From Bugula neritina (lineage: Eukaryota > Animalia > Bryozoa), in the NCBI GenBank assembly GCA_964035545.1, contig CAXIUT010000221.1, positions 1-26,940 of the forward strand: a stretch of DNA of 26,940 bases, read 5' to 3'. A model generated the notes under the pieces. That model was given only the letters and a program-made list of their open reading frames with translations. It did not search any database and was not told the DNA's origin. Below are positions 731 through 26,940 of the stretch, piece after piece (within the stretch, counting starts at the first letter, position 1; the number at the start of each line of letters is the position of its first letter). The position numbers and the translations under genes were made by a program.

Positions 731-2424
731 TCATTTATCAGTTTTTCTGTTGATGAATTGATAAAGACTATTTTTTCTTTTTTTAACATGAATTTAACTA
801 GGATACTAACATTTCATTTCCGAAAGCATTGTATAAAATTATTTCCAAATTAGAAACTATTTGATCGAAGGAACTCCTCTCAAACAAATCAAAGGCTTTA
901 TTGCTTAATGTTCGCACCATTGATAGTTATAATACTATTTCTTTAGAGGAAGATGTTTCCATATATTACCTGTCTTCAAAACATACTAAAATTTCTTCTT
1001 TAATTATTAATCATTGAAAAAGAAATTGTTGTATTTGGCTGAATATGCCTCATAACCCAATCTCGCTAAGTAATACGAGCTGAACTCAAAGCTTTTAGGG
1101 TGTGTGTTGATCATTTGATTGACACATTAAAGAAATTATATGAAGATGGGAGCTTCTTAGTTCATTTTTTATTTTTAAAAACCTAACCTGAAATTAAAAG
1201 GATGTCCGAAACTGACAAACTACTTTTAAACCAATATGCTGAACCCTTTGATAGTTCTATAGAAGGGATCGATGATAAGTTGAGCAAGAGCTGATACTTG
1301 ACAAGTTCTATCAACTCCTAAATTTTAGCAAAGAATCACCTGCGTTCCTGTCTATCTGATAATATAGATACTTTGAGGTGTTCAACAGCCAGATATGCAC
1401 TTTTAAGCAAGTTATTAATATCTTGATACCAAATTTATAACAATTTGAATATTTTCTAATCTTTTGAATACGCTACTATCAACTTCTTGAAAGAACTATT
1501 AACCGCAATATTGGTTTGAAATTTATAGCAGTAATTGATACATCGCATAGATTCTACTTACTTCGAATGGTATTATTCCTACTTCAATTCGATAAACATC
1601 GGTTTGTAACCTATTTCTTTCATGTATGCTTGGTTGTATCTGTTATTTTATTGATATGGCATTAATCTACCCGTCCGCCAGAGACAAGCCTTGCATTCTG
1701 TCCAGTAGTAGGTCGCAATTGGTATCCTTCCACCGTTTCTTATCTTCAAACATTATTATAATAAATTTTGCTACACTTTTTTAGGCACAATCTATATTAG
1801 CAAAGAACATACGAAGTATTTTGGATAAGTAGGACAAAGTGCTCCGTTTTAATTTTTGACAATGATGAGGGAATCCCAGTTAACTCGTATTCTTTGCATT
1901 TAAGCCAGACAATCATAGGTGAGTGATTCTTCCTGTGCAAATATATTTTTAGTAAAGAATGGTATCAACATATATCCTTTCAAAAAATATTGATAAAGCT
2001 CTTGAACTTCATTGACAGTTGATTTGATTCTAAATTTGATACCAGTTTTCAAGAGTATCAAAATATCTGATTTGGAGATATCTATTTCATGCATAAAAGA
2101 GAAAGGAATCGATATTGGTATTCTTACTCTATTATTTCTGATTTATTATTTGATAGATGGCTAGAAATGAAACAAAAAGATGAGGACTCGGTAGTTTGTA
2201 ACTAATGCTTTTGCTTATCCTTGGAAAGTTTTTGAATCTCCCTATACATAGATTTTGAAAAATTGTTTATGAAGGATCATCTCACCGTCGATAAAGTATA
2301 TGTTGTTGCTGCCTTGACTGATCTATTATTGGAAACTGATCTATTCGTTGTAATGATCCTACTCGAAAAGAGTCAACTATTCTAGCTACACGATGCTGGA
2401 AGTAGGTTTGCTTGATGATTTCAT
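731..2424 (-). CDS. Myotubularin-related protein, probably a pseudophosphatase (~557 aa)
   Basis: With TAR=Glu: [85 protein letters not shown]. One 20-nt GT-AG intron (1352-1371) restores the frame. ATG at 2424, TGA at 733-731. Confidence 0.9.
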
Positions 2425-2481
2425 TCTTTTTATAGTTTGTTATTATATTATAAGATTATTCAAATTGAATTATCAAATCAA

Positions 2482-8928: not shown

Positions 8929-10461
8929 TCATTATTTTTTTAGTACATTAGTTGCTCTAACTTTTTTGAACCCATCAAGGAAATGTTCAGTCATTAAAAT
9001 TTAGTGTTTTATTGGATGCGCCAAATCGAATACTGTTTCTTGAAGCTCACCTATTGATTTCTTTACATGCTATTTACTCTAGAGAAGAGTTGCTGAAAAT
9101 CTGGAGACATCCAATTGATCATTCATCTTTACAAATTTAGTCACATAATGTGTACTTTATTCCTCTTTGCCCAAACAAAAGAATTTATTTTATCCTACCT
9201 GAACTTCATCACTGTCAAGGGCGATAAGATCGAAAGATGCATCCATAGATTTATCAGTCCATACTCTATATACAGTTTTTTTGCCTGGGAGGGTTGATTT
9301 ATCTGGATCTGCTGAAAATTTCATCCTTGGAACACCATTCAGTGATGTTAGTTTGCATACAAGACCGAGAGCTGGTTGTTTTTTGCAGGTGGCAATATGT
9401 GTGCCAATAGCATATACATCAATTTCACTTTTATTTGCTTACATTTATATTAATCTATCTTCATGGAGATCATCAGAAGCGAAGATGGTGAACTTCAAGT
9501 TAGGAACGAATTTATTCCATGTTGACCTGCATTGTTGTGAGAGTCTGCAAAGATCTCCAGAGTCGAGTCTTATTCCGAAGTCATTTATTCCTGCTTCAGA
9601 GAGAGCTTTTGCTACGATGATGGTATTGAGGATTCCTGATTCGAGTGTGCTGTATGTATCAACAAGGGTTTTGAAGTTGGTGCTGAAAGTGCGAGCATAG
9701 CTCAGAAAAGCAGCTAGTTCTCCTGCATGGGTTTTCCATCCGAGTTATTTTTTTATGGCATGAGCTCTTTTAACAATAGGAATATTATTAATTTCAAATT
9801 CTTAAATCTAGTCTTCAGCAGCGTAAGATGTGATGAAAGCATGAGACATAGTTCCCAAACAAGGTATTTAGTAGATCTGACTGGCTTTCATATTAGATGT
9901 TCCATAGAATCCTCCAAGAAATGCATATGAACTAGCAGATAATCCTCCATCTGGACCCTGAGCTCTTCGAATTCCAAACTAAACACACTTCTTAGGATAA
10001 ATTGCCTTAGCCATTCTGCTTGCGTTAGTTGCTACCAAAGAAGCGAAACCAATGAGGTTCAAGATAGGTGTCTCCAATAATTGAACGAATCCCAAAGGAC
10101 CAGTATAAGAGATCAGAGGCTACCTAGCAAAGACAATAGATCCTTATTTAAAAGCTTTGACTGTTATTTTAGAAGAGAAGTCTTGCCTGAGCCATTCAAA
10201 ATATTATTCGGTTAAGTTTGGAAGAGTAGATTTGAGGAAGCGTTAGTGTTATTTGGTGATTTTCAAGGAATCGATGAACTTCCTAACAGCTTCAAGTCCA
10301 GCGAAGATGGCATACTATCCACCGAAGGGATGCTTTCTGAAGAAAACTTCAAAAGTTGCTTCCTGTTAATGTTTTTTGGCCTGGAAGTAGGTGAAAGAGC
10401 AGGTGAACTGATAGAGGTCGTTGAAGAGAACATCAACGTTGTTGGTAGGTTGTTTTTCCAT
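8929..10461 (-). CDS. NAPRT: Nicotinate phosphoribosyltransferase (510 aa)
   Basis: [91 protein letters not shown]. Single frame from ATG to TGA. Confidence 0.96.
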
Positions 10462-10658
10462 TTTAAGTAGCTTTCTTTTCAATTATAATACTATATCAAG
10501 GCGGGTCTGGCTTTAACATACATTCTATTCAATTTTGACGAAGAAGCATATAAAACCATACTCAACTAAAATAATTATATCACCGAAAAACAAAAACAAA
10601 TACAAATCTATCAAACATAATACTTACAAGTTGACATATTCAATTTATAGATTTACAA

Positions 10659-11018
10659 TCACGATAGATATTTTTGTTAGAGCTCTTTTAGCTAGGCTAG
10701 ATTGGGTGCTCCTGTTTTCTGATAAATTTTTTAGGCTCCCTTGTAAAAAGCTAAAGTAGGCACTCCTGCTATATTATGTTCTCCAACTAGTTCTCCGAGT
10801 TCTTATTGGTCAACATCGATTTTAATCAAAGCCCATTTACCTCCATTTTAACTTTCTAACTTGCTAATGACAGGCCATAGCATTTTACATGGTCCACACC
10901 AATCAGCAAAGAAATCCAAGACATATGGTGTCTTGAGTCCTGACACCAATTTGTTGTACTCTTACATATTTTTAACTGCATGGAATTTAGATGACAATCT
11001 GGTTAGATTTCTGAACAT
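10659..11018 (-). CDS. Thioredoxin, probably mitochondrial (119 aa)
   Basis: LDFFADWCGPCK active site, KIDVD and GVPT. The N-terminus MFRNLTRLSSKF resembles a mitochondrial presequence. Confidence 0.93.
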
Positions 11019-11090
11019 GATATATGATGATGTAATAGATCTTGATCTAAATATTAAAGATGATATTTAAAAGATTCAGGTTGTTTATCA

Positions 11091-11621
11091 TCACTAATTC
11101 TGGAAGTTTTATTCTTTGAGGGCGTCGATGATACTCTATGATGATTTTTCGATCTGAAGTTGAGTCATAAGATTTTCGAGAAATCGCTTTTGGGACATGA
11201 GGTCGATGTATTCTGATGAAGATCCATTTCTCAAGTTTTTCAATTTTTAGTTTACCTCAATCAACTCCTAAAAAATAAATTCTTCATCGACTTCACTTTC
11301 ACTCTACATTGAGAAACTTTTTTGATCTCCCTCGATCTGATCTTCTTTCACATCCACTTATAGAGGCTCTTCGTTCTCGATTTCAGCTTCAATACTTTCT
11401 TCCTTGATCTCTTGGTTGTCAATGAGTTCGATATTTCTTTCTCCTTGCAAGACAATAGGTGCAAACACTGTCTGCTGATGTTCAGTCTGATAACTCTCAC
11501 AGGCAGAAATTTGTTCTTGACTCTTTTCACCTTCCTAAGACTTGACACTGCTGCTTGCACTACTGACGATAGGTTTCGATTGCATGAGTGAAAATGATTT
11601 GTATGAACGACTGCTCAGCAT
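11091..11621 (-). CDS. Hypothetical acidic protein (176 aa)
   Basis: Uninterrupted ATG-to-TGA frame under code 30 that fills the gap between neighbours. Glu/Ser-rich, with no recognised domain. Confidence 0.7.
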
Positions 11622-11678
11622 CGCTTGTCTAATTTAATGAAGTATATATATAGAGCGAGCATATAAAATGTAAAAAAA

Positions 11679-13403
11679 TCATAGAATGGTATTTCGATCA
11701 GTATTATCTGACATTAGTAAATATCTTTATAAAATCTTTTTTAATGGATATTTATTTTTCTTTGTTTTTATGCTAGCAAGTCCATCAGTTGAACTAAATT
11801 TCTTTTAAAGAATAGGTTCATATTTATTTTAACGATTTTATTGTTTTTAGTTGAATGTTGACATTTTACTGTTTGCTTTGAAAAAAGGACTTCTATCAAA
11901 TGTTTTCTTCTTGAAATGGCTACCAGAATGTGCAGAAAGATTTCTACTTTTGTTATCAAATTATTCAGATCGCTATGATGCTTTATCTTGATTAGAAAAT
12001 TGATGATTTTTAGGTTTCTATTTAATAAGATTTTTCTTCTATATTCCTGTAAAATACTAATTCGTATTGTATTTAGGATTCCAATAGGTAGATTTTGTTC
12101 TATTCAACTTCTATTTTTACCCTTTTTCTGATAATAGATCTAATTTACTGACAGATAGCGATTAACTTTCAATCATTCCAAGGTATACCTGCTCTTTCCT
12201 AATCAATTTATCAATAACTGTATTTTTTATTTGCAATTTCTTGTTACATTAAGCCTTTACCCTCAAGACCTCTTGTTTAAAATATTACTCACATCTAACC
12301 AATGATTAAGGATCTGTATTTTATCCTCCTTTTCTTATATACTAATTTTATTATCTTAGCTGTTAAATTTAAAGTTTAAAGTTCTCGATTTTTTGTTCAG
12401 ATATTTGCAAAGATTTTGTTAATTTAATATTATGTTAATTTTTATTTTATAATAACTAACATATCTATTCCCATTTCATTTATATCTAACTATATTATTG
12501 CTCTAAAGCCTACATATTTTATTTTAATTATTGATTCTCTCTTTTTTATTTACCATTTTCATATTATAGTTTTTTAAGCTAAATTTCTTTGTTATTTACT
12601 GTCTCAGAAAGACGATTTATTTCTTAATTGTTTAAGTTATTTTCATTTTATAATTCTTATACTTTTATATTCAACTAATCTATTATTTTTTTTGTGTTTG
12701 CATATTCTTAATTTATTTCTGATAAAACATTCTACTTCTACATCTATAAACTTTTTATCTTACGACTATTTTATTTATTTTGGATCTTCACTATTTCTTT
12801 AAGTTTTGAATTTTATAGGACGATTCTATCGATCTCATTTTCAATTTATTTTTCTTTAAGTTTAATATATTCCTTTTCCTTGCCAATATTATCAACAATA
12901 GCCAACAAATACGATTCTAAATTAGTTAAAATTTCTTTATTTTATTTTTGGAAATCTAAGATCTATGACCTAACTATCTCTCTTTCTTTTCTTAATTTTT
13001 TTATAACCATTTTCAGCAATTTTATCATTTTAAGCAACTACAATCTCCTTAATTTACCATTCAATGGATCTTGCAATTCGATATACAAAGACTATCCTGA
13101 TCCAATTTAACATTGTACCTTTTTATTAGTATATCTAACTTATATTTTATCTTTATTTGACTTATGAAGTTATGCCTTGGTAAAACTTTCACCCGAATTA
13201 CAACTATTTCTCACTTTATCTTTACTACCACATATCTAATTTATTTCTATAAATGAAGTTTATAGAAGATGATCAATTTGTCTACAGATATGCTAGCGAC
13301 TATGACGCTACCCATTTTCTGAGAGGTTTATTTATACTTTGCTGTTATTTGAATCGCTAAGAGAATATATCTAGAGGAGATTCTATTCTGTTTAGCCTTC
13401 CAT
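11679..13403 (-). CDS. Hypothetical Glu/Lys-rich coiled-coil protein (~574 aa)
   Basis: ATG at 13403 and TGA at 11681-11679 are in the same frame, and both ends translate cleanly. The middle was not read codon by codon, so introns are possible. Confidence 0.65.
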
Positions 13404-15834: not shown

Positions 15835-15926
15835 GGGTTGGGGTTGGGGTTGGGGTTGGGGTTGGGGTTGGGGTTGGGGTTGGGGTTGGGGTTGGGGTTG
15901 GGGTTGGGGTTGGGGTTGGGGTTGGG
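15835..15926 (+). repeat. Internal telomere tract 1, (GGGGTT)n, right-end orientation
   Basis: About 92 nt of perfect T2G4 repeats. Confidence 0.97.
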
Positions 15927-16775
15927 AAAAATGAGAAGTAGCATCAAATGTTTCAGAAATAAAGAGACCATCGCTACCCTTAGTAGTTGATGCATATTGT
16001 TAGGATATATTAATGAATTTTTACTTGATTTTGCCGCATAGATTCAAAGCACCTTCGATCTCTTGTTCAGGATTGTTTGTTTCAACTGATGTACTAATAA
16101 TAGCAACATATAATCCTTGTTTGGGGTTGGGGTTGGGGTTGGGGTTGGGGTTGGGGTTGGGGTTGGGGTTGGGGTTGGGGTTGGGGTTGGGGTTGGGGTT
16201 GGGAGTTGAGGTAAGATGATTTGAACAGATGGAATGTTCTCTGTTCTAGGAATAGGATGGTCTAGAATGCAAATGCATCTTATGATTTTTTAAACAAATT
16301 TAACTCTTTCTTTTAGTACCTGAACGTAAAGCATATGTTGGATGACAAATTACAGTTTTACATTTAGCAATGCCTTCAGGTCTCTTAACTCCGATAACTT
16401 TACCATCTTCAAATAGAATATAATTGATATCTGTGTTCAACATCAATAGCTAAATATCAAGATATTTACTAACTCTAGTTTTGAGCAATACTTTAACTAG
16501 TTTCCCTCCGTACATGATATATTTAGGTGTAAGATCAATATTCCAATCTCTATTATGTCCAAGATCTTTGCTAGGTTCCTCTTTATCTCTGTACAATTTC
16601 CACAAATTTGTTAGGTTAACTGATGCTCCTTATCCTCCATAAAAACCACTTCTATCAATATGGAGAACTTTCTTTCCTGAATCAATGAAGATATACCTTA
16701 TTGGGAGAGAAGACCAGAGAGGATGCACTCGATGAGACCTGTTCCGCAAACTACTACATAATATAATTACTCCAT
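15927..16775 (-). pseudogene. GDI: Rab GDP-dissociation inhibitor, disrupted as assembled
   Basis: [94 protein letters not shown]. 20-nt intron at 16677-16696. Lesions: a large internal deletion near 16450, a frameshift near 16318, a telomere tract at 16121-16203, and a 3' end that runs into tract 1. The family call is firm; true pseudogene status is uncertain. Confidence 0.85.
16121..16203 (+). repeat. Internal telomere tract 2, inside the Rab-GDI coding sequence
   Basis: About 83 nt of perfect T2G4 repeats flanked on both sides by collinear GDI coding sequence. Confidence 0.97.
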
Positions 16776-16985: not shown

Positions 16986-18245
16986 ATGGGAAGCTCTCAT
17001 GACAAAAAGCCTTAACGGAAAACTCAATACACATAGAACGATGATTCCGATTCCGAAAGTTCAGAAGTTAGTGATAACTAGCAATCATTTGGAGGTGACA
17101 GTCTCTATTAGGTCAAGCCATCTGAAATGAAATCACAACTTCATAGACATATAGGAGTTTTAACTTATTATAATAAGTAGGGATAACTTGGAAAAGGTAC
17201 TGGAATACTAATTTCACCTAATTTGATTTTGACTTGTGCTCATAATATAGTCAATAGAAGAAATTAAGAATAATACTATGACTTCAAATTCTACCCGGGT
17301 CATCATGGAGATTTGAAAAACTTCTATGATATTGAAAAATATTTTTATCCTAATAGATATAAATCTAAAGGAGGTTATAAATATGATTATGCTTTGCTGA
17401 AATTAACAAAAAAGATAAATACTTAAAAATTTATTCCCCTTCATTCAGGATAGATGGAAATAAATAAAGATTTATAAATAGCTATTTTTGGCTATCCTGT
17501 AGATAAATATTCCAAATAAAATCCTAGAAGTGAATTATAAACAGTTAAGCAATGGGGACTAATCAAAAAAGGATTAGTTAAAGATATCGACAGAGAAGGT
17601 CGATTAGTTCATACGATATCAACTAAAAGTGGTCAAAGTGGTGCTCCAGTAATAGGAATCGTATAAAATAAACATTATTCTATAATTGGAGTTCATAAAG
17701 GAGGACATATTTCTCAAAATAGACTTGAAGGAAATGTAGGAAGAATTATTACAAATGATTTGTTAGAGATATTGTAAGAGTAAACTCTCCAACTTGAAGC
17801 CGAAATGTTTTATATTTACAAAGATGGATAATTGATTAAAAAAAATGATGATAAAAGTGGATAGATGAGTGAATTAATTAAACATTAAATTGATCAAAAA
17901 TAAAAAATTATTATAGAAAGATGTTATAATCTTGACCAAAATAATCCATAAACTTTCAATAGATTAGGTGCTGCACTAATAAAAATAAAAAAATATCAAG
18001 AAGCAATAAAATCTTTTAGAAAAGTTCTTGAAATAAATCCATAACATTCTCTTGCTTTAAATAACTTGGGTTTGGCACTTTTGAAAAAGAAAAAAACAAA
18101 TGAAGCGATAAAATATTTTAAAAAGGCAATTTAAATGAATTAGTTTTTTTCACATGCTTATAAAAATTTAGGAATAGCATATAACAGAATAAATTTAAAA
18201 GATGAGGCATAAAAATGTCTTAAAAAGGCTAAATAAATACAATGA
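16986..18245 (+). CDS. Trypsin-fold (V8/glutamyl endopeptidase-like) serine protease with 3 TPR repeats, copy 1 (419 aa)
   Basis: Intact and intronless. MGSS start; GKGTGILISPNLILTCAHN (His); YDYALLKL (Asp); IFGYP; STKSGQSGAP (Ser); IIGVHKGG; then TPRs such as ALNNLGLALLKKKKTNEAIKYFKKAIEMN. Confidence 0.92.
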
Positions 18246-18438
18246 TCACATATTTCAGATAATCTATCTATGTATCAACTTTATTTGTTATTATTCTAGA
18301 TAAAGAATCTTATTGCTATGATCTATTTTTTTAATAAAATAGTTTATTTGAATGATTTATTATTTATTATTGATTATACAATATCTATCTCTTGATATCT
18401 AATAAAAATTAAAAGATTTGATACTCACTGAAATATTC

Positions 18439-19758
18439 ATGGGAAATACTTGTAATCAATAAACATATTGTCAGGCAGGTGACTCTGATTAATAATCCTA
18501 AGATGATTTTTATAGTGATAACTAAGGTGATTTTTTCAGTGAAATTCTCTATCAAGTTCCTCAAAATTAAATGCAGGAGCAACTGTTTAGACATATTGGA
18601 GTTTTGACTTATTACAATAAAAAAATGCAACTCGGCAAAGGAACAGGCGCCCTGATCTCACCTAATCTGGTCCTAACTTGTGGCCATAATCTCTATGACA
18701 GAATAAAAGGATAACAATACTCGAATTTTCAATTTTATCCAGGCCATTCAGGAATTCTAAAAGAATTTTACGAAGTATAATCATTTTTTTTACCTGAATA
18801 ATACAAACCACGAATAACTATCAATATGATTACGCACTATTGAAGTTAAAATAAAAAGTCAATTCAACAGAATTCATTCCCTTAAATTCAGGTTAGATGT
18901 AGGTAAACAATGAAATAGAAATAGCTATATTCGGATATCCTGGAGATGAATACAAACAAAAAAGTGCCAGAAAGAATATGCTATCTGTCGATCTTTTTGA
19001 TTGATAAGAAAAGGGTTGGTATTGAAAACAAATTCAAAGGGAAATTGGTTCATCAAATATCGACTAAGAGAGGTCAGAGTGGTGCTCCAATCATCGGAAT
19101 AGATAAAAAAGATAAACTTGTTATCATTGGGATTCATAAAGGTAGAATTTTACAAAGAAATAACAGTTTTAAGGAAACGTTGGAAGAATGATTACTCCTT
19201 AACTATTAAAAATATTAAAAAATAAACAAAAAAACTTTAAGCCTAAAAATTTGAAATTTATGAAGAATAAGATATTTTTAAAAGAAGATAGAACAAATAA
19301 ACAGTATAAATATCAAGGAGACGAATGTCAAATGTTTTTTCTTTTAGTAAAGTAATCCTAAAACATATTTTAACAAGGGATATTAATATTATGAACAAAA
19401 TAACTATTAACAGGCAATAAAGTGGTATAAAAAAGCAATCAACTATGATCCATATTATGAAATTGCTTATAACAACTTAGGTATAATCTATGATAAGCTA
19501 CATAAGACAGAAGAGGCAATATTTTACTATAAATAGGCCATTAGAATAAATCCCTCTCTTACAGAGGTTCACAATAATTTAGGAAATGTATATAGAAAGA
19601 TATAAAAGATAGATGAGGCAATATAGTGTTATAAAAAAGCAATTAAGTTGGATCCTAGAAATTAAACTGCTTCTTCTAATTTGAAACTAATTTAAAAAAT
19701 CAAAGATAAAAGTATATTTGGATCATATTCTAGAAAAACAAGAGCTATTTCGATTTGA
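18439..19758 (+). CDS. Serine protease-TPR protein, copy 2 (several frameshifts as assembled)
   Basis: MGNTC start; LTCGHN; YDYALLKL; STKRGQSGAP; IIGIHKG; 3 TPRs (AYNNLGIIY, VHNNLGNVY). About 5-6 single-base slips between ~18805 and ~19350, mostly in homopolymer runs. Confidence 0.85.
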
Positions 19759-19990
19759 TTTATTTTTATTTCTTTTAAAACATATATATATTGATGAAAT
19801 ACCATTTTTTTATTCATAGATATTTTAAACTTATCATTAAGTAGAAAATATTATTAACTCTTCAATTTTTATATATTAAAGAGACTAATATTTAGTCATC
19901 ATAATTAATTATCTATGGATATAAATATATTTTATATCATTCAAAATAAGAATAGTTATTAATAAAGATAAATAATTCTTTAAGACATTC

Positions 19991-21466
19991 ATGGGAAATA
20001 CTTGTGGCTTATCAAATAAATAACCTCATCAAAAAGAAAACTCCTAAAATATTATAAATAAAACCAAATAAGATGATTATTGCAATTAGTATCTTTGCTA
20101 AGTGAAAAATAATCAAATGAAATCAAAAATATTTCGACAGATTGGTGTTCTAACTTACTTGAAAAAACAATAACAAGGAAAAGGAACTGGTTTTCTTATT
20201 TCGACTAATTTGGTATTAACTTGTGCCCATCATCTATATGATTTATCAAGAGGATAATATAACGAGAAGTTCCAATTTTATCCTGGCCACTCAGGACAGC
20301 TAAAATAATTTTATTAAGTTGAATCCTTTTTTATACCCCAGTAATATAAAATATCAAAGATTCTAAATATGATTATGCATTGTTGAAGTTGACTTAAAAA
20401 GTAGACATATAAAATGATATTCCTTTGAATTCTGATTAAAAGGATGTGAACAATTAATTGGATATAGCCATATTTGGATATCCTTAAGCTGGTTATATCT
20501 AGAATGTTCAAAATAATAGTGTATTTGTAAATTTATATGGATTGATTCGGAAGGGATTGATTATCAAAATAACTTAAAAAGGTTAATTAGTGCATCAAAT
20601 ATCAACTAAAAATGGTCAGAGTGGAGCACCTATCATAGTAATAGATAAAAATGGTAACTTTACTATAATAGGAATTCACAAAGGCAGACATGTTGAAAAC
20701 GATGGTGTTTAAGGTAATGTAGGAATATTAATAACTCCTGAATTGATATCAATTATGTAGAAATAAGCAAAAACAATGAAAGCAGACATGTTCAAAATAA
20801 ATAATAATAATAATGAAAATAATAATAAAATCAGATAATATTTAGTATATATAATTGATATACAATAGAAAAATAGATTAGAAAATGCTTTTTAATAGAA
20901 TCAAAATGATCCATAACTATATTTTGACCTAGGAATAGAACTGCATCGAATACATAAGTATGAATAGGCAATTACATGTTACTAAAAGGCAATATAAATA
21001 AATCCTCATTCATCATGGTTTTATTTTTGGTTAGGATATTCTTTTTTTAGCATAAAATAATATTAAAATGCTCTTAGATCTTATTAAAAAGCTATATAGA
21101 TAAAAGATAATGATGAAGATTCATATTATGGTTTAGGTAATACACTATATTAACTATCAAGATATGAAGAGGCAATCAAATCTTACTAAAAAGCTATTGA
21201 AATAAACCCCTATAATTCATAATTTTATCATAGTTTAGGTCTAGCTTTTAATAAGATAGATAAATATTGAGTAAGTTCTTAAATGTTATGATAGGATACT
21301 TTAGTTTGACTGTCGAAGTTAAAGTACTTCAGATAATTATAAGTAGAGTAATACTTTTGCTAAGATCGTGATCAAAGAAGAAACAAGTAAACAAAAAAAA
21401 TTAAAATAATAATTTGTTTATAAAAAATAGAAAGTCTTCTAGAAGATGGAATTTCCTTCGATTTGA
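19991..21466 (+). CDS. Serine protease-TPR protein, copy 3 (about 3 frameshifts as assembled)
   Basis: MGNTC start; LTCAHH; YDYALLKL; STKNGQSGAP; IIGIHKG; 4 TPRs (e.g. SYYGLGNTLYELSRYEEAIKSYEKAIEINP). Slips near 20070, 20350 and 21268. Ends with tcg att tga, as copy 2 does. Confidence 0.85.
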
Positions 21467-21566
21467 TATGATTTATTTGAAAACAAAATTATTATAAAAG
21501 ATAAATAGTTTACAATTTATTATTTTTTGATAATACCTAAAATAGTGAATAATTTTAACATCAATA

Positions 21567-22163
21567 ATGAAAGCATTGATGGTAAATTCCACCAGCAATC
21601 ACATAATAAAAGACAAGATGTGGGACTAACAATACATGAAACATCTACGCGAAGTCTAGAAAATAAACAATCGATAAGCCTAGCAAATATCCAAAGACAT
21701 CAAAACTTATAGAAGTATTAATGATTTACATCACAAACATAAACATTATTCTTTTTAATGGCAACATAAAAAACAAAATTAACAGCTATAGTAAAAAAAC
21801 TAAAAAATCAAAATAAAATCACAGAGATCAGACCATATATGAGGTTCAGACATCGATATCAGCCAATTAGCTCTTAGGCTGAGTAAAATAGAAGTAAAGA
21901 TAAGTAAGAAGGAGAAGATAGAAGGGGGTAGACTAGTCCACCGAAATCAAATTAGAAGAAAAGAAGTCGGTATGCTTTGCATTACCAATATCGCAAGAAA
22001 AGACAGGAATAAATCGATCATGAAAATATGAAATTACAAAAGGTATTCTATCACAACGAAGCACCTACCTCCTAAAATCAGACAAACTAGACTAGCAAAC
22101 CATACCGGCCACAGCATGGACATGCGTGGAATCGAATCCGACAAGCTGAAAGGTCCAGAGTGA
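21567..22163 (+). CDS. Hypothetical protein, possibly CFAP97/KIAA1430-domain ciliary protein
   Basis: KMWDEQYMKHLREV..and ALHYQYRKKRQEEIDHENMKLQK resemble the RKK..E.I..EN..L motif. Needs one frameshift near 21815 and probably an intron near 22043. The 3' end is uncertain. Confidence 0.45.
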
Positions 22164-22205
22164 TATTATCTTCAAATAAAATAAATAAAATTATCGAAGA
22201 AGAAG

Positions 22206-23867
22206 ATGTCTTATCCCTTATAACAATCAAAACAATCAAAAGGGAAAGAAATGGTCACCATCGACTATCGAAACGGCAAATATCAAGGCCATGTATCTGA
22301 AACAGACAAGATGAGGACGGGTGTGGGCATGATGATCGACCATAATTACATGTTCTGCCTTGCATAGTGGAAAGAGGGGAAGATCGATGGGTCGGCCTTT
22401 GTCCTGTATCCTGACAATTCTCTGTTCTATGGCTGTATAAAAAATGGAGAGCCGTTTGGTTTTTGTGTGTATGAGGCGAATTGGTTTGGTAAATTATGTC
22501 AATTTTGCATCAGGTGATGATTTCATGATGGTCCAGGATGACACCAGTAACAACAACTTGATATTTGTGAAGATAGATAAAAATAGGATGTAGAAATTGG
22601 TGAAGGGATAAAATACAACATAAAATCACTAGAATAAATAAAAAAGATAACAACCGCCAATCATAGAATAAAAACGATATAATTCACAATAGCAAAAAAC
22701 AAAATTAATATCAACTTATCTAAATACCTCAATAAAACAGAATAGTTATCAATAATTCATCCGTTAAAAATTGATAAAAAAACAACGAAGACATAGATTA
22801 CATGTAAAATCGAGAATAGATCCAACTAAAATACAAAAAATCATCAATAGTTTTAAGATTATCCCAAACCAACCAAAACCAAATAACCCTAAAAGCTCTA
22901 GGATACTACAATTCGATAACAAATTCATTATAAATATCAAAAAAACAAATAAATAACACTACCATCATGGAAACAATCGACAATCAATACACAGACTATT
23001 CTATTTAAGGTAATTAGAGGCCCAAGTAGTGCATTACTGGCTTGCATATATACTATAAACAGTCGCTCAGGTTTATGAATTAGTATCTGAGGGTTGATTA
23101 CTTGTATCGGGTCAAATTTATCTATCACTCGGTTTAGGAATTGTTGGCTAGGGTTAATAATAATAGTCAAGCGCAAATCATACTATAATCCGGGATAAGA
23201 CTGGATTAGAGGTAAAATAATATTATATCATCTAGAAATAATCGATATTAGATAAAATAAAATCAATAAAAAGCATCAAGAAATATGCGATATGAAGAAA
23301 GAGAAAGTAGTCCAGTTGACAACCGTGTATATCCATTGCATAAAGTAAAATAAGAGATCTATCGGGCTATAAAAAGGAAGAGTCTTTCAAACAGTCGAAA
23401 TACATATAGAAAATAACCAGTAGTTAACCATACGCAATCAGTATACTAAAGATTTAAACCCCACAAATAAATCATTTTCATATCATCAGCAAAACACTAC
23501 AACACCAATAAAACCAACAACTGATAAAATGAACAAAACATCCGTGACATCATATACAAGTCCTCCAAAAAAACATAACCAGCCAAAATATCATCCACCC
23601 GTTTCTGTTTCAGAACAGAACAGACCAAAAAGGGCATCAAAGAGTCCGCTTTCGAAGTATGCCTATCTCGATCAGATGTCATAGTAAAGAAATATCAGAA
23701 AAATAGATAATATCAACACTTTGACCCAATACTACGAGGCAGTATAGAAAGATTTGAGAAAAGATAAACCATCAAAACTGCAAAAACCATCTAAAGCATA
23801 CGAATTGTATCCGACCAATACATCACCGCTCGGTCCGAGGAAGATACTTAAGTATGGCTGGGATTGA
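22206..23867 (+). CDS. MORN-repeat-like protein with a long low-complexity tail (frameshifted as assembled)
   Basis: YRNGKYQGHVSETDKMRTGVGMMI..AEWKEGKIDGSAFVLYPDNSLFYGCIKNGEPFGFCVY, and a terminal frame ending KILKYGWD-TGA. Several frame slips lie in between, so this could be more than one gene. Confidence 0.55.
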
Positions 23868-23949
23868 TACTTGTTTTGATTGATCTATCAAATTTATTCA
23901 TCAAATATCAAATAAAAGATAATATACAGAATAATCAGATATCTCTCAC

Positions 23950-24024
23950 GGGGTTGGGGTTGGGGTTGGGGTTGGGGTTGGGGTTGGGGTTGGGGTTGGG
24001 GTTGGGGTTGGGGTTGGGGTTGGG
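23950..24024 (+). repeat. Internal telomere tract 3, (GGGGTT)n, right-end orientation
   Basis: About 75 nt of perfect T2G4 repeats. Confidence 0.97.
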
Positions 24025-26826: not shown

Positions 26827-26940
26827 GGGGTTGGGGTTGGGGTTGGGGTTGGGGTTGGGGTTGGGGTTGGGGTTGGGGTTGGGGTTGGGGTTGGGGTTGG
26901 GGTTGGGGTTGGGGGGGTTGGGGTTGGGGTTGGGGTTGGG
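26827..26940 (+). repeat. Right terminal telomere (GGGGTT)n
   Basis: T2G4 repeats to the window end, with one irregular G7 unit near 26911. Confidence 0.98.

Follow-up and report, generated by a model that had tools for sequence, protein, structure and literature searches.

What kind of protein is encoded by a tandem gene triplet on contig CAXIUT010000221.1 (assembly GCA_964035545.1, deposited under the bryozoan Bugula neritina), in whose genome does it lie, and are all three genes intact? The whole stretch of DNA that was analysed, 26,940 nucleotides long and called the window below, carries these genes at 16986-21466, and their predicted proteins join a trypsin-fold protease to a C-terminal array of tetratricopeptide repeats (TPRs). 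The window is ciliate somatic DNA in which TAA and TAG encode glutamate. Our best explanation, to which as a whole we give somewhat better than even credence, is that the triplet is a tandem array of three paralogues of a ciliate-specific gene family, these being old, with saturated synonymous sites. The protease is assigned by sequence profiles and by a predicted fold to the S1B (V8-like) subfamily, and each protein is most likely cytosolic.

Three protease-TPR genes in tandem and the identity of the protease

The three genes lie head to tail on the plus strand and share one architecture, as an initial annotation of this DNA had proposed: their frames begin with Met-Gly (MG), all carry the full triad of His, Asp and Ser in that order, and all end in TPRs. 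In each protein, some 40 residues of hydrophilic linker precede a protease domain of about 230 residues, from which a connector of 35-50 leads to the repeats. The three share the motifs LTC(A/G)H, YDYALLKL and GQSGAP, and none of them requires an intron. A search of the window (tblastn, code 30) found no fourth copy.

Gene 1 (16986..18245, plus strand) is an intact open reading frame (ORF) of 419 codons, 26 of them in-frame TAA or TAG, that opens with MGSSH and closes with TGA; a contig of one public sequencing run (X1) is identical to it over its whole length. Its acidic linker is followed by the S1B-like protease domain (17112..17810, residues 43-275), which is identified by collinear sub-threshold matches of sequence pieces to Trypsin_2 and Trypsin and by homology to a metagenome protein, P0012. 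The triad codons are those of His86 (17241-17243), Asp134 (17385-17387) and Ser218 (17637-17639), and two residues of the S1 pocket are Thr213 (17622-17624) and His237 (17694-17696). Three TPRs follow at 17946..18236 (residues 323-354, 357-385 and 391-415), with Pfam TPR_1 matches at E values of 6.6e-10 and 6e-09. Gene 2 (18439..19758, plus strand) has 441 codons after six bases are restored. It opens with MGNTC, with Cys at positions 5 and 11, and continues through an acidic linker into a protease at 18556-19249 (His83, Asp131 and Ser215, with codons at 18685, 18828 and 19078) and three TPRs at 19357-19668 (TPR_1, 1.8e-09 on 19411-19533). Gene 3 (19991..21466, plus strand) has 491 codons after insertion of one base behind 20347 and deletion of base 21267. 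It also opens with MGNTC, with Cys5, and encodes a linker, a protease at 20102-20793 (His80, Asp128 and Ser211, with codons at 20228, 20371 and 20620) and three to four TPRs at 20908-21319. The pocket residues corresponding to those of gene 1 are Thr210 and His234 in gene 2 and Thr206 and His230 in gene 3. The tail of gene 3 is Lys-rich, and its last two residues, Ser-Ile, are the same as those of gene 2.

Some of the features claimed for the triplet hold for part of it only. An acidic linker is found in genes 1 and 2 (13 acidic and 6 basic residues, and 14 and 0, among the first 50) but not in gene 3, where the two kinds are balanced at 8 each. Repeat numbers of 3, 3 and 4 had been given: TPR_1 scores 38.8, 35.8 and 37.5 bits on pieces of genes 1 and 2 (cut-off 27.8), and a purpose-built TPR profile, made from the repeats of a related metagenome contig (L002), recovers three units in every gene, whereas the fourth unit of gene 3 is visible by eye. 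The reported contrast between close protease cores and more divergent linkers and TPRs is reproduced, with pairwise identities of 53-63% in the protease, 37-41% in the TPRs and 26-44% in the linkers.

The window proteins were scanned as stop-free pieces of 26-50 residues, and evidence on the family was also drawn from homologues. The pieces themselves match Pfam Trypsin_2 at the His and Ser ends of the model (18.7 and 14.0 bits) and Trypsin (14.0 bits), below the cut-offs and collinearly; NCBIfam gave nothing useful. Chaining of all protease pieces with MAFFT fails where the three paralogues share a TAA or TAG and misplaces the IAIFGYP pieces, and the usable profile was A1, an alignment of the Ser blocks of the paralogues (68 profile positions from 85 columns, in which two tails are slightly misaligned and one TTG is translated as Met). 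Searched against 1.84 billion proteins, A1 gave 164 matches at E<=0.001, the majority of them short, unnamed fragments from metagenomes; such fragments are expected, because ciliate genes are cut at reassigned stops. The best full-length matches (P0012, P0016, P0023 and P0084) share 34-45% identity with gene 1 across 240-264 residues, P0012 reaching 45% over 259 residues, and all four pass the Pfam thresholds for Trypsin_2 (32-43 bits, cut-off 27.6) and Trypsin.

A family profile (A4) matches the Bacillus intermedius glutamyl endopeptidase BIEP (1p3c) across the full domain at E 1.4e-30, Staphylococcus aureus V8 at 2.2e-15 and Esp at 8e-14, versus about 1e-8 or weaker, and over part of the domain, for the chymotrypsin-type S1A enzymes; A4 includes four bacterial sequences, and its scores against bacterial proteins may be inflated. 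The AlphaFold model of P0012 (mean predicted local distance difference test 83.5, above 90 across most of the domain) gives the same ranking against the PDB: 1p3c comes first (Z 28.0, root-mean-square deviation 2.2 over 210 residues), V8 and Esp follow at Z 24-25, the exfoliative toxins at 23 and S1A enzymes at about 21. Ranks 1-17, at Z 22.9-28.0, are nearly all S1B (Escherichia coli YdgD at rank 8 is the exception) among at least 500 S1 matches. By proxy of this model, the three proteins would have the double beta-barrel chymotrypsin fold. A1 alone gave weak matches to NIa/TEV and V8 among PDB sequences (E 0.09-1.3), those to viral 3C/NIa proteases being attributable to a shared GIHKG-type motif. 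The S1 pocket agrees with the subfamily, as GIHKG or GVHKG aligns with GVHNAG of BIEP and GIHWGG of V8, and the Thr five residues before the nucleophile Ser aligns too. In S1B enzymes, the equivalents of Thr/Ser190 and His213 are linked to specificity for an acidic or amide residue at P1. The V8-like identity first suggested for the protease is thus right at the level of the subfamily.

Relatives, lipid anchoring and possible roles

The nearest relatives are unnamed metagenome proteins on ciliate-like contigs, which are 34-45% identical over the protease and share its motifs and its C-terminal helix. Their C-terminal partners differ. P0012 has none and ends soon after the protease, contig L005 (1966-3221) adds a coiled coil and L007 (1-940) a leucine-rich repeat (LRR) module, the frames of the last two running through TAA and TAG. 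L002, a contig with 41% G+C from another organism that also reads TAA and TAG as Glu, carries at 9824-11854 a single TGA-bounded ORF in which the protease leads into at least eight TPRs of nearly identical sequence; its database entry (P0017) is limited to the first 207 residues since the gene call ended at a TAA. Most relatives lack the MG start and begin with M-S-K, M-E-G or M-E-A. Because the partners range from TPR to LRR, coiled coil and none, the family fits a design in which the protease is the constant part and the C-terminal recognition module is variable and exchangeable.

The initial annotation recognised no characterised ciliate family with this architecture, and our searches of proteins and literature likewise returned none. 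Among 20 clusters looked up there was no named ciliate protein (two were labelled 'V8-like Glu-specific endopeptidase' and one 'hypothetical protein', and the sole NCBI one was bacterial). A word-index search with P0012 returned itself, P0084 and one weak match. The literature search gave no relevant result on ciliate trypsin-like-TPR proteins or ciliate glutamyl endopeptidases. The combination of an S1B protease with TPRs is thus found in no named protein or paper in these searches.

A second group of proteins (P0047, P0081, P0088, P0094, P0111 and P0136) is encoded on gene-sized AT-rich contigs (e.g., L006, 1.6 kb, 21% G+C) and has an MG start and two to three tandem Trypsin_2 domains. They resemble the triplet in their MG(I/N)C N-termini, in having no signal peptide and in motifs GSSGSP and IGIHKG, but their similarity is much lower (E values of 6e-8 to 2e-4 for the Ser block), they have repeated protease domains and no TPRs, and P0111 carries DUF285 repeats. 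They appear to form another ciliate family of cytosolic S1 proteases, farther removed from the triplet. Within the host itself, many partial contigs match the stretch at 85-95%, which indicates that the family is probably multi-copy in this genome.

Among the three paralogues, nonsynonymous divergence (dN) is 0.54-0.58 in the TPRs versus 0.24-0.37 in the protease, so the TPRs are the faster part, in agreement with the variability ascribed to them. The ratio of dN to synonymous divergence (dS) is below 1 in every domain; dS is saturated (0.7 to >2), and the ratio is therefore uninformative on positive selection. The description of the repeats as diversifying is for these reasons not supported. 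A bacterial origin of the protease domain, also raised early on, is plausible by sequence affinity because the characterised neighbours and the nearest ESM Atlas clusters are all bacterial.

The N-termini bear on where the proteins would act. None of the three has a hydrophobic stretch in its first 50 residues (Kyte-Doolittle 12-residue maxima -0.84 to 0.29), and the three proteins contain no segment hydrophobic enough for a signal peptide or membrane span, as had been stated; a cytosolic location is most likely because there is no signal peptide. All three proteins carry Gly2. In genes 1 and 3, no other in-frame ATG lies between the preceding TGA and the MG codons. The proposed acylation signature, Gly2 with a nearby Cys, holds for genes 2 and 3: both fit the N-myristoylation context of PROSITE PS00008 (GNTCNQ and GNTCGL), and Cys5 follows, with Cys11 as well in gene 2. 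A predicted lipid anchor on these two proteins is about an even call, and membrane anchoring is a reasonable reading of the sequence for two of the three genes only.

The mechanism we favour runs as follows. The proteins would be active cytosolic endopeptidases whose equivalents of Thr190 and His213, shared with V8, BIEP and the 3C/NIa proteases, favour cleavage after Glu or Gln, an assignment made from aligned residues that we consider fairly probable. Copies 2 and 3 would be tethered to the cytosolic face of a membrane by an N-myristoyl group on Gly2 and a palmitoyl group on Cys5. The TPRs would dock substrates or a regulator, or hold the protease in check; that the repeats act as a docking or autoinhibitory module is a balanced proposition.

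Several points weigh against this mechanism. Gene 1 (GSSHDK) does not fit PS00008, since position 5 after Gly is occupied by Asp, and no Cys occurs among its first 12 residues. Gene 2 has an in-frame ATG upstream of its MG start (18352..18438, plus strand), which would prepend 29 codons with a hydrophobic stretch first. Genes 1 and 3 have no counterpart of this extension, and since nucleotide conservation between genes 2 and 3 begins at the ATTCATGGGAAATACTTGT motif, just before the MG codons, it is probably untranslated. The fold and family assignment was made in part through proxies of 34-45% identity, and the P1 specificity from two aligned residues. Activity may also need an additional processing step, because secreted S1B enzymes require a freed N-terminus and the linker here is uncleaved. 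Finally, among the public runs listed, none recorded as RNA contains the stretch.

The strongest competing explanation, although clearly the less probable one, is that these are housekeeping or regulatory proteases of the cytosol, processing enzymes particular to this lineage that might act, for instance, on cortical, ciliary or membrane-associated substrates. Their TPRs would recognise unchanging host partners (chaperones or C-terminal peptides, for example), and the proteins would have no part in conflict. TPRs are generic docking modules, all domains appear to be under purifying selection, the paralogues are old and the neighbouring genes are housekeeping genes; P0047, P0081 and P0094 moreover suggest a broad use of cytosolic S1 proteases in ciliates. 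But we found no orthologue with a known function, and module swapping is unusual for a fixed role. Nor is this a broadly conserved eukaryotic housekeeping enzyme, because no named reference proteome is represented among the best 150 of the 164 matches (E<=0.001).

The initial annotation had leaned towards defence or signalling. In that case the proteins would be intracellular sensor proteases of a ciliate defence or conflict system, with the variable TPR or LRR module sensing a foreign or danger-associated ligand and unleashing the protease, in the manner of the protease effectors of bacterial Avs, Lamassu and VMAP-type systems. The multi-copy family, the C-terminal repeat module swapped between relatives and the faster divergence of the repeats all agree with such a role, as do matches to the PADLOC models LmuA and RT-Protease_XI and the known use of trypsin-like effectors in conflict systems (PMC7159879). 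Several findings speak against this: the triplet lacks an NTPase (nucleoside triphosphatase) switch, and neither a Death-like adaptor nor a partner gene accompanies it; the TPRs have a dN/dS below 1; the PADLOC matches do not extend beyond the generic protease domain; and the neighbours are ordinary housekeeping genes. We therefore regard a defence role as unlikely. Still more speculative is the full version of it, an NTPase-free module of innate immunity made of membrane-tethered, Glu/Gln-specific sensor proteases with a domain acquired from bacteria. Binding of a pathogen or prey ligand to the variable TPR or LRR module would activate these proteases, and self-cleavage of the Glu-rich linker might also free them from the membrane.

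Host, genetic code and repaired reading frames

TGA is the sole stop in the window, and TAA and TAG stand in frame across all its genes, at 26-44 codons per gene in the triplet. In the alignment of the three paralogues, these codons are most frequently opposite Glu (29 positions, against 12 opposite Gln); for example, L-E-A-E-M-F in gene 1 corresponds to L-z-A-z-K-F in gene 2, where z is TAA or TAG. Compared with 14 homologues from other organisms, Glu is found at 25% of the TAA/TAG positions, a 3.3-fold enrichment, and Gln is not enriched. The near-identical TPRs of L002 have TAA or TAG exactly where sister repeats carry GAA or GAG. TAA and TAG thus encode Glu in the host, which is the peritrich code (table 30), and the Glu excess in both paralogues and homologues confirms that translation with this table, as originally recommended, was correct. 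Annotation with the standard code would shred every gene of this ciliate. The ends of the window are telomeric, with (CCCCAA)n at 1-65 and (TTGGGG)n at 26831-26935, and the host telomeres are of the C4A2 type; G+C content is 23-37%.

These features bear directly on the idea that the proteins are digestive enzymes which a bacterivore secretes or delivers to its food vacuoles, or that the genes are bacterial contamination. The closest characterised relatives are indeed secreted bacterial proteases, and the nearest ESM Atlas clusters are bacterial, but the absence of a signal peptide, the cytosolic character of TPRs and an MG start, the in-frame TAA and TAG codons, the telomere repeats and the eukaryotic genes alongside (GDI, myotubularin and SelO, see below) make both versions very improbable.

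In the window as written, gene 1 is the sole continuous ORF of the three. Gene 2 contains six -1 shifts, and gene 3 has one -1 shift near 20347 and one +1 shift near 21267. We compared the stretch with Logan contigs of four public runs. Contigs of two of them (X1 and X2) have an extra base behind 18804 (A), 18998 (G), 19035 (A), 19166 (T), 19216 (A) and 19341 (T), all in gene 2, and an extra A behind 20347 in gene 3, in the same alignment column as 18804 in gene 2, and they lack base 21267, an extra T which in the assembly creates a false TGA at 21265-21267. These eight sites are all the indel differences listed for the two runs over the stretch. A third run from another study (X3), at low depth, shows the changes at 18998 and 20347. 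X1 and X2 possibly come from the source sample of the assembly; they are therefore suited to finding consensus errors, and are not independent evidence that the sequence occurs. Seven sites fall within or next to runs of A or T, and at 18998 a single G is doubled after a T run. With the eight changes applied, all three genes are open throughout, with 419, 441 and 491 codons, a single TGA closes each of them, and the deletion of 21267 keeps the fourth TPR of gene 3 in frame.

The eight breaks are assembly errors, because the public short-read contigs repair all of them. A programmed frameshift or tiny introns in genes 2 and 3 were also considered and are ruled out, every break being repaired in the public contigs. 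That gene 1 alone is functional and genes 2 and 3 are decaying pseudogenes, as the six and two frame changes needed in the window might suggest, is hardly tenable when the contigs of X1 and X2 differ by indels at exactly these sites, X3 agrees at two, the sites have the homopolymer context described and the corrected genes are open from ATG to TGA with intact triads. Intact, intronless paralogues are hence the right description of the organism, and it is the window text of genes 2 and 3 that is damaged: single-base homopolymer errors of the assembly break real genes. The eight errors are packed into 2.5 kb (18804-21267) of genes 2 and 3, with none in gene 1, and the tandem repeat region was probably poorly polished.

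The genes identified around the triplet are ordinary eukaryotic ones. Directly upstream, on the opposite strand, lies a GDP-dissociation inhibitor (GDI) gene, and the other neighbours identified encode a short-chain dehydrogenase (SDR), SelO, a myotubularin-like phosphatase and a WD40 protein. The myotubularin-like gene (734-2472, minus strand) consists of two ORFs in different frames, split near 1339-1381 by either a small intron or another assembly error. Three further (TTGGGG)n tracts lie inside the window (15838-15921, 16121-16198 and 23954-24019). Two internal tracts of this kind fall within the GDI frame on the minus strand and are translated as PNPN and PQPQ runs; the tracts look like telomere sequence overwriting real sequence, or like alternative chromosome ends. 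Downstream of the triplet, 21467-23960 has no clean ORF in any of the six frames, a G+C content of 33-35% and a strongly positive AT skew. Its overlapping open frames switch phase, and it may be a gene broken by more assembly errors. Rfam gave no RNA family in this interval, and tRNA and Rfam scans of the window gave no matches.

Comparison with known protease systems

The S1B, or V8-type, proteases are secreted bacterial enzymes and toxins. The triplet shares with them (BIEP, 1p3c; S. aureus V8, 1qy6 and 1wcz; S. epidermidis Esp; the exfoliative toxins) the fold and the order of His, Asp and Ser, together with motifs FYPG, D-Y/F-A-L/V and GYPGD, a Thr placed five residues ahead of the nucleophile Ser, and G-I/V-H-x-G/A-G after that Ser. 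The identity is only about 20%, and cleavage after Glu by the ciliate proteins is predicted from this likeness. The S1B enzymes are made with a signal peptide and a propeptide, and their freed N-terminus helps form the S1 site. In contrast, the triplet proteins have no signal peptide and no hydrophobic N-terminus of the kind found in a secreted precursor with a removable propeptide; they begin with MG, in an acylation context in genes 2 and 3, and their protease is flanked by a linker on its N-terminal side and by TPRs on its C-terminal side. The S1B domain was thus apparently adopted by ciliates, where it is cytosolic and probably lipid-anchored, has multiplied and is joined to interchangeable recognition repeats. 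If the proteins are active, they would illustrate clearly how an extracellular protease of bacterial type has become an intracellular eukaryotic one. To our knowledge, proteolytic signalling and immunity are almost unexplored in ciliates, and the family is a candidate entry point into them.

The second comparison is with prokaryotic defence proteases (Lamassu LmuA, RT-Protease class XI, Avs2 and VMAP/iSTAND/STAND), which share a Trypsin_2-type domain. The protease domains of the homologues match the PADLOC model of protease-type LmuA at 1e-17 to 1e-12 (best 1.2e-17), over the first 171 of its 425 positions, and RT-Protease_XI at 1e-8 to 4e-10. We also observed that P0012, P0084 and L002:9986-10621 score higher with the LmuA model (58-62 bits) than with Pfam Trypsin_2 (36-43 bits). 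The likeness is confined to the protease domain, and the ciliate proteins are not members of these systems. Trypsin-like effectors are frequent in NTP-dependent bacterial conflict systems, which are built around an NTPase switch (PMC7159879). The prokaryotic systems need an NTPase or SMC switch and operon partners, and the triplet has neither; no NTPase switch module is present in it, nor is there room for one, because only about 35-50 residues separate protease and TPRs. Of the link to prokaryotic conflict systems drawn in the initial annotation, the resemblance at the level of domains therefore stands, whereas the switch and the partner genes have no equivalent here. Prokaryotic conflict systems also join a protease to a repeat-type recognition module (PMC7159879), and this general theme is one that the ciliate proteins share with them.

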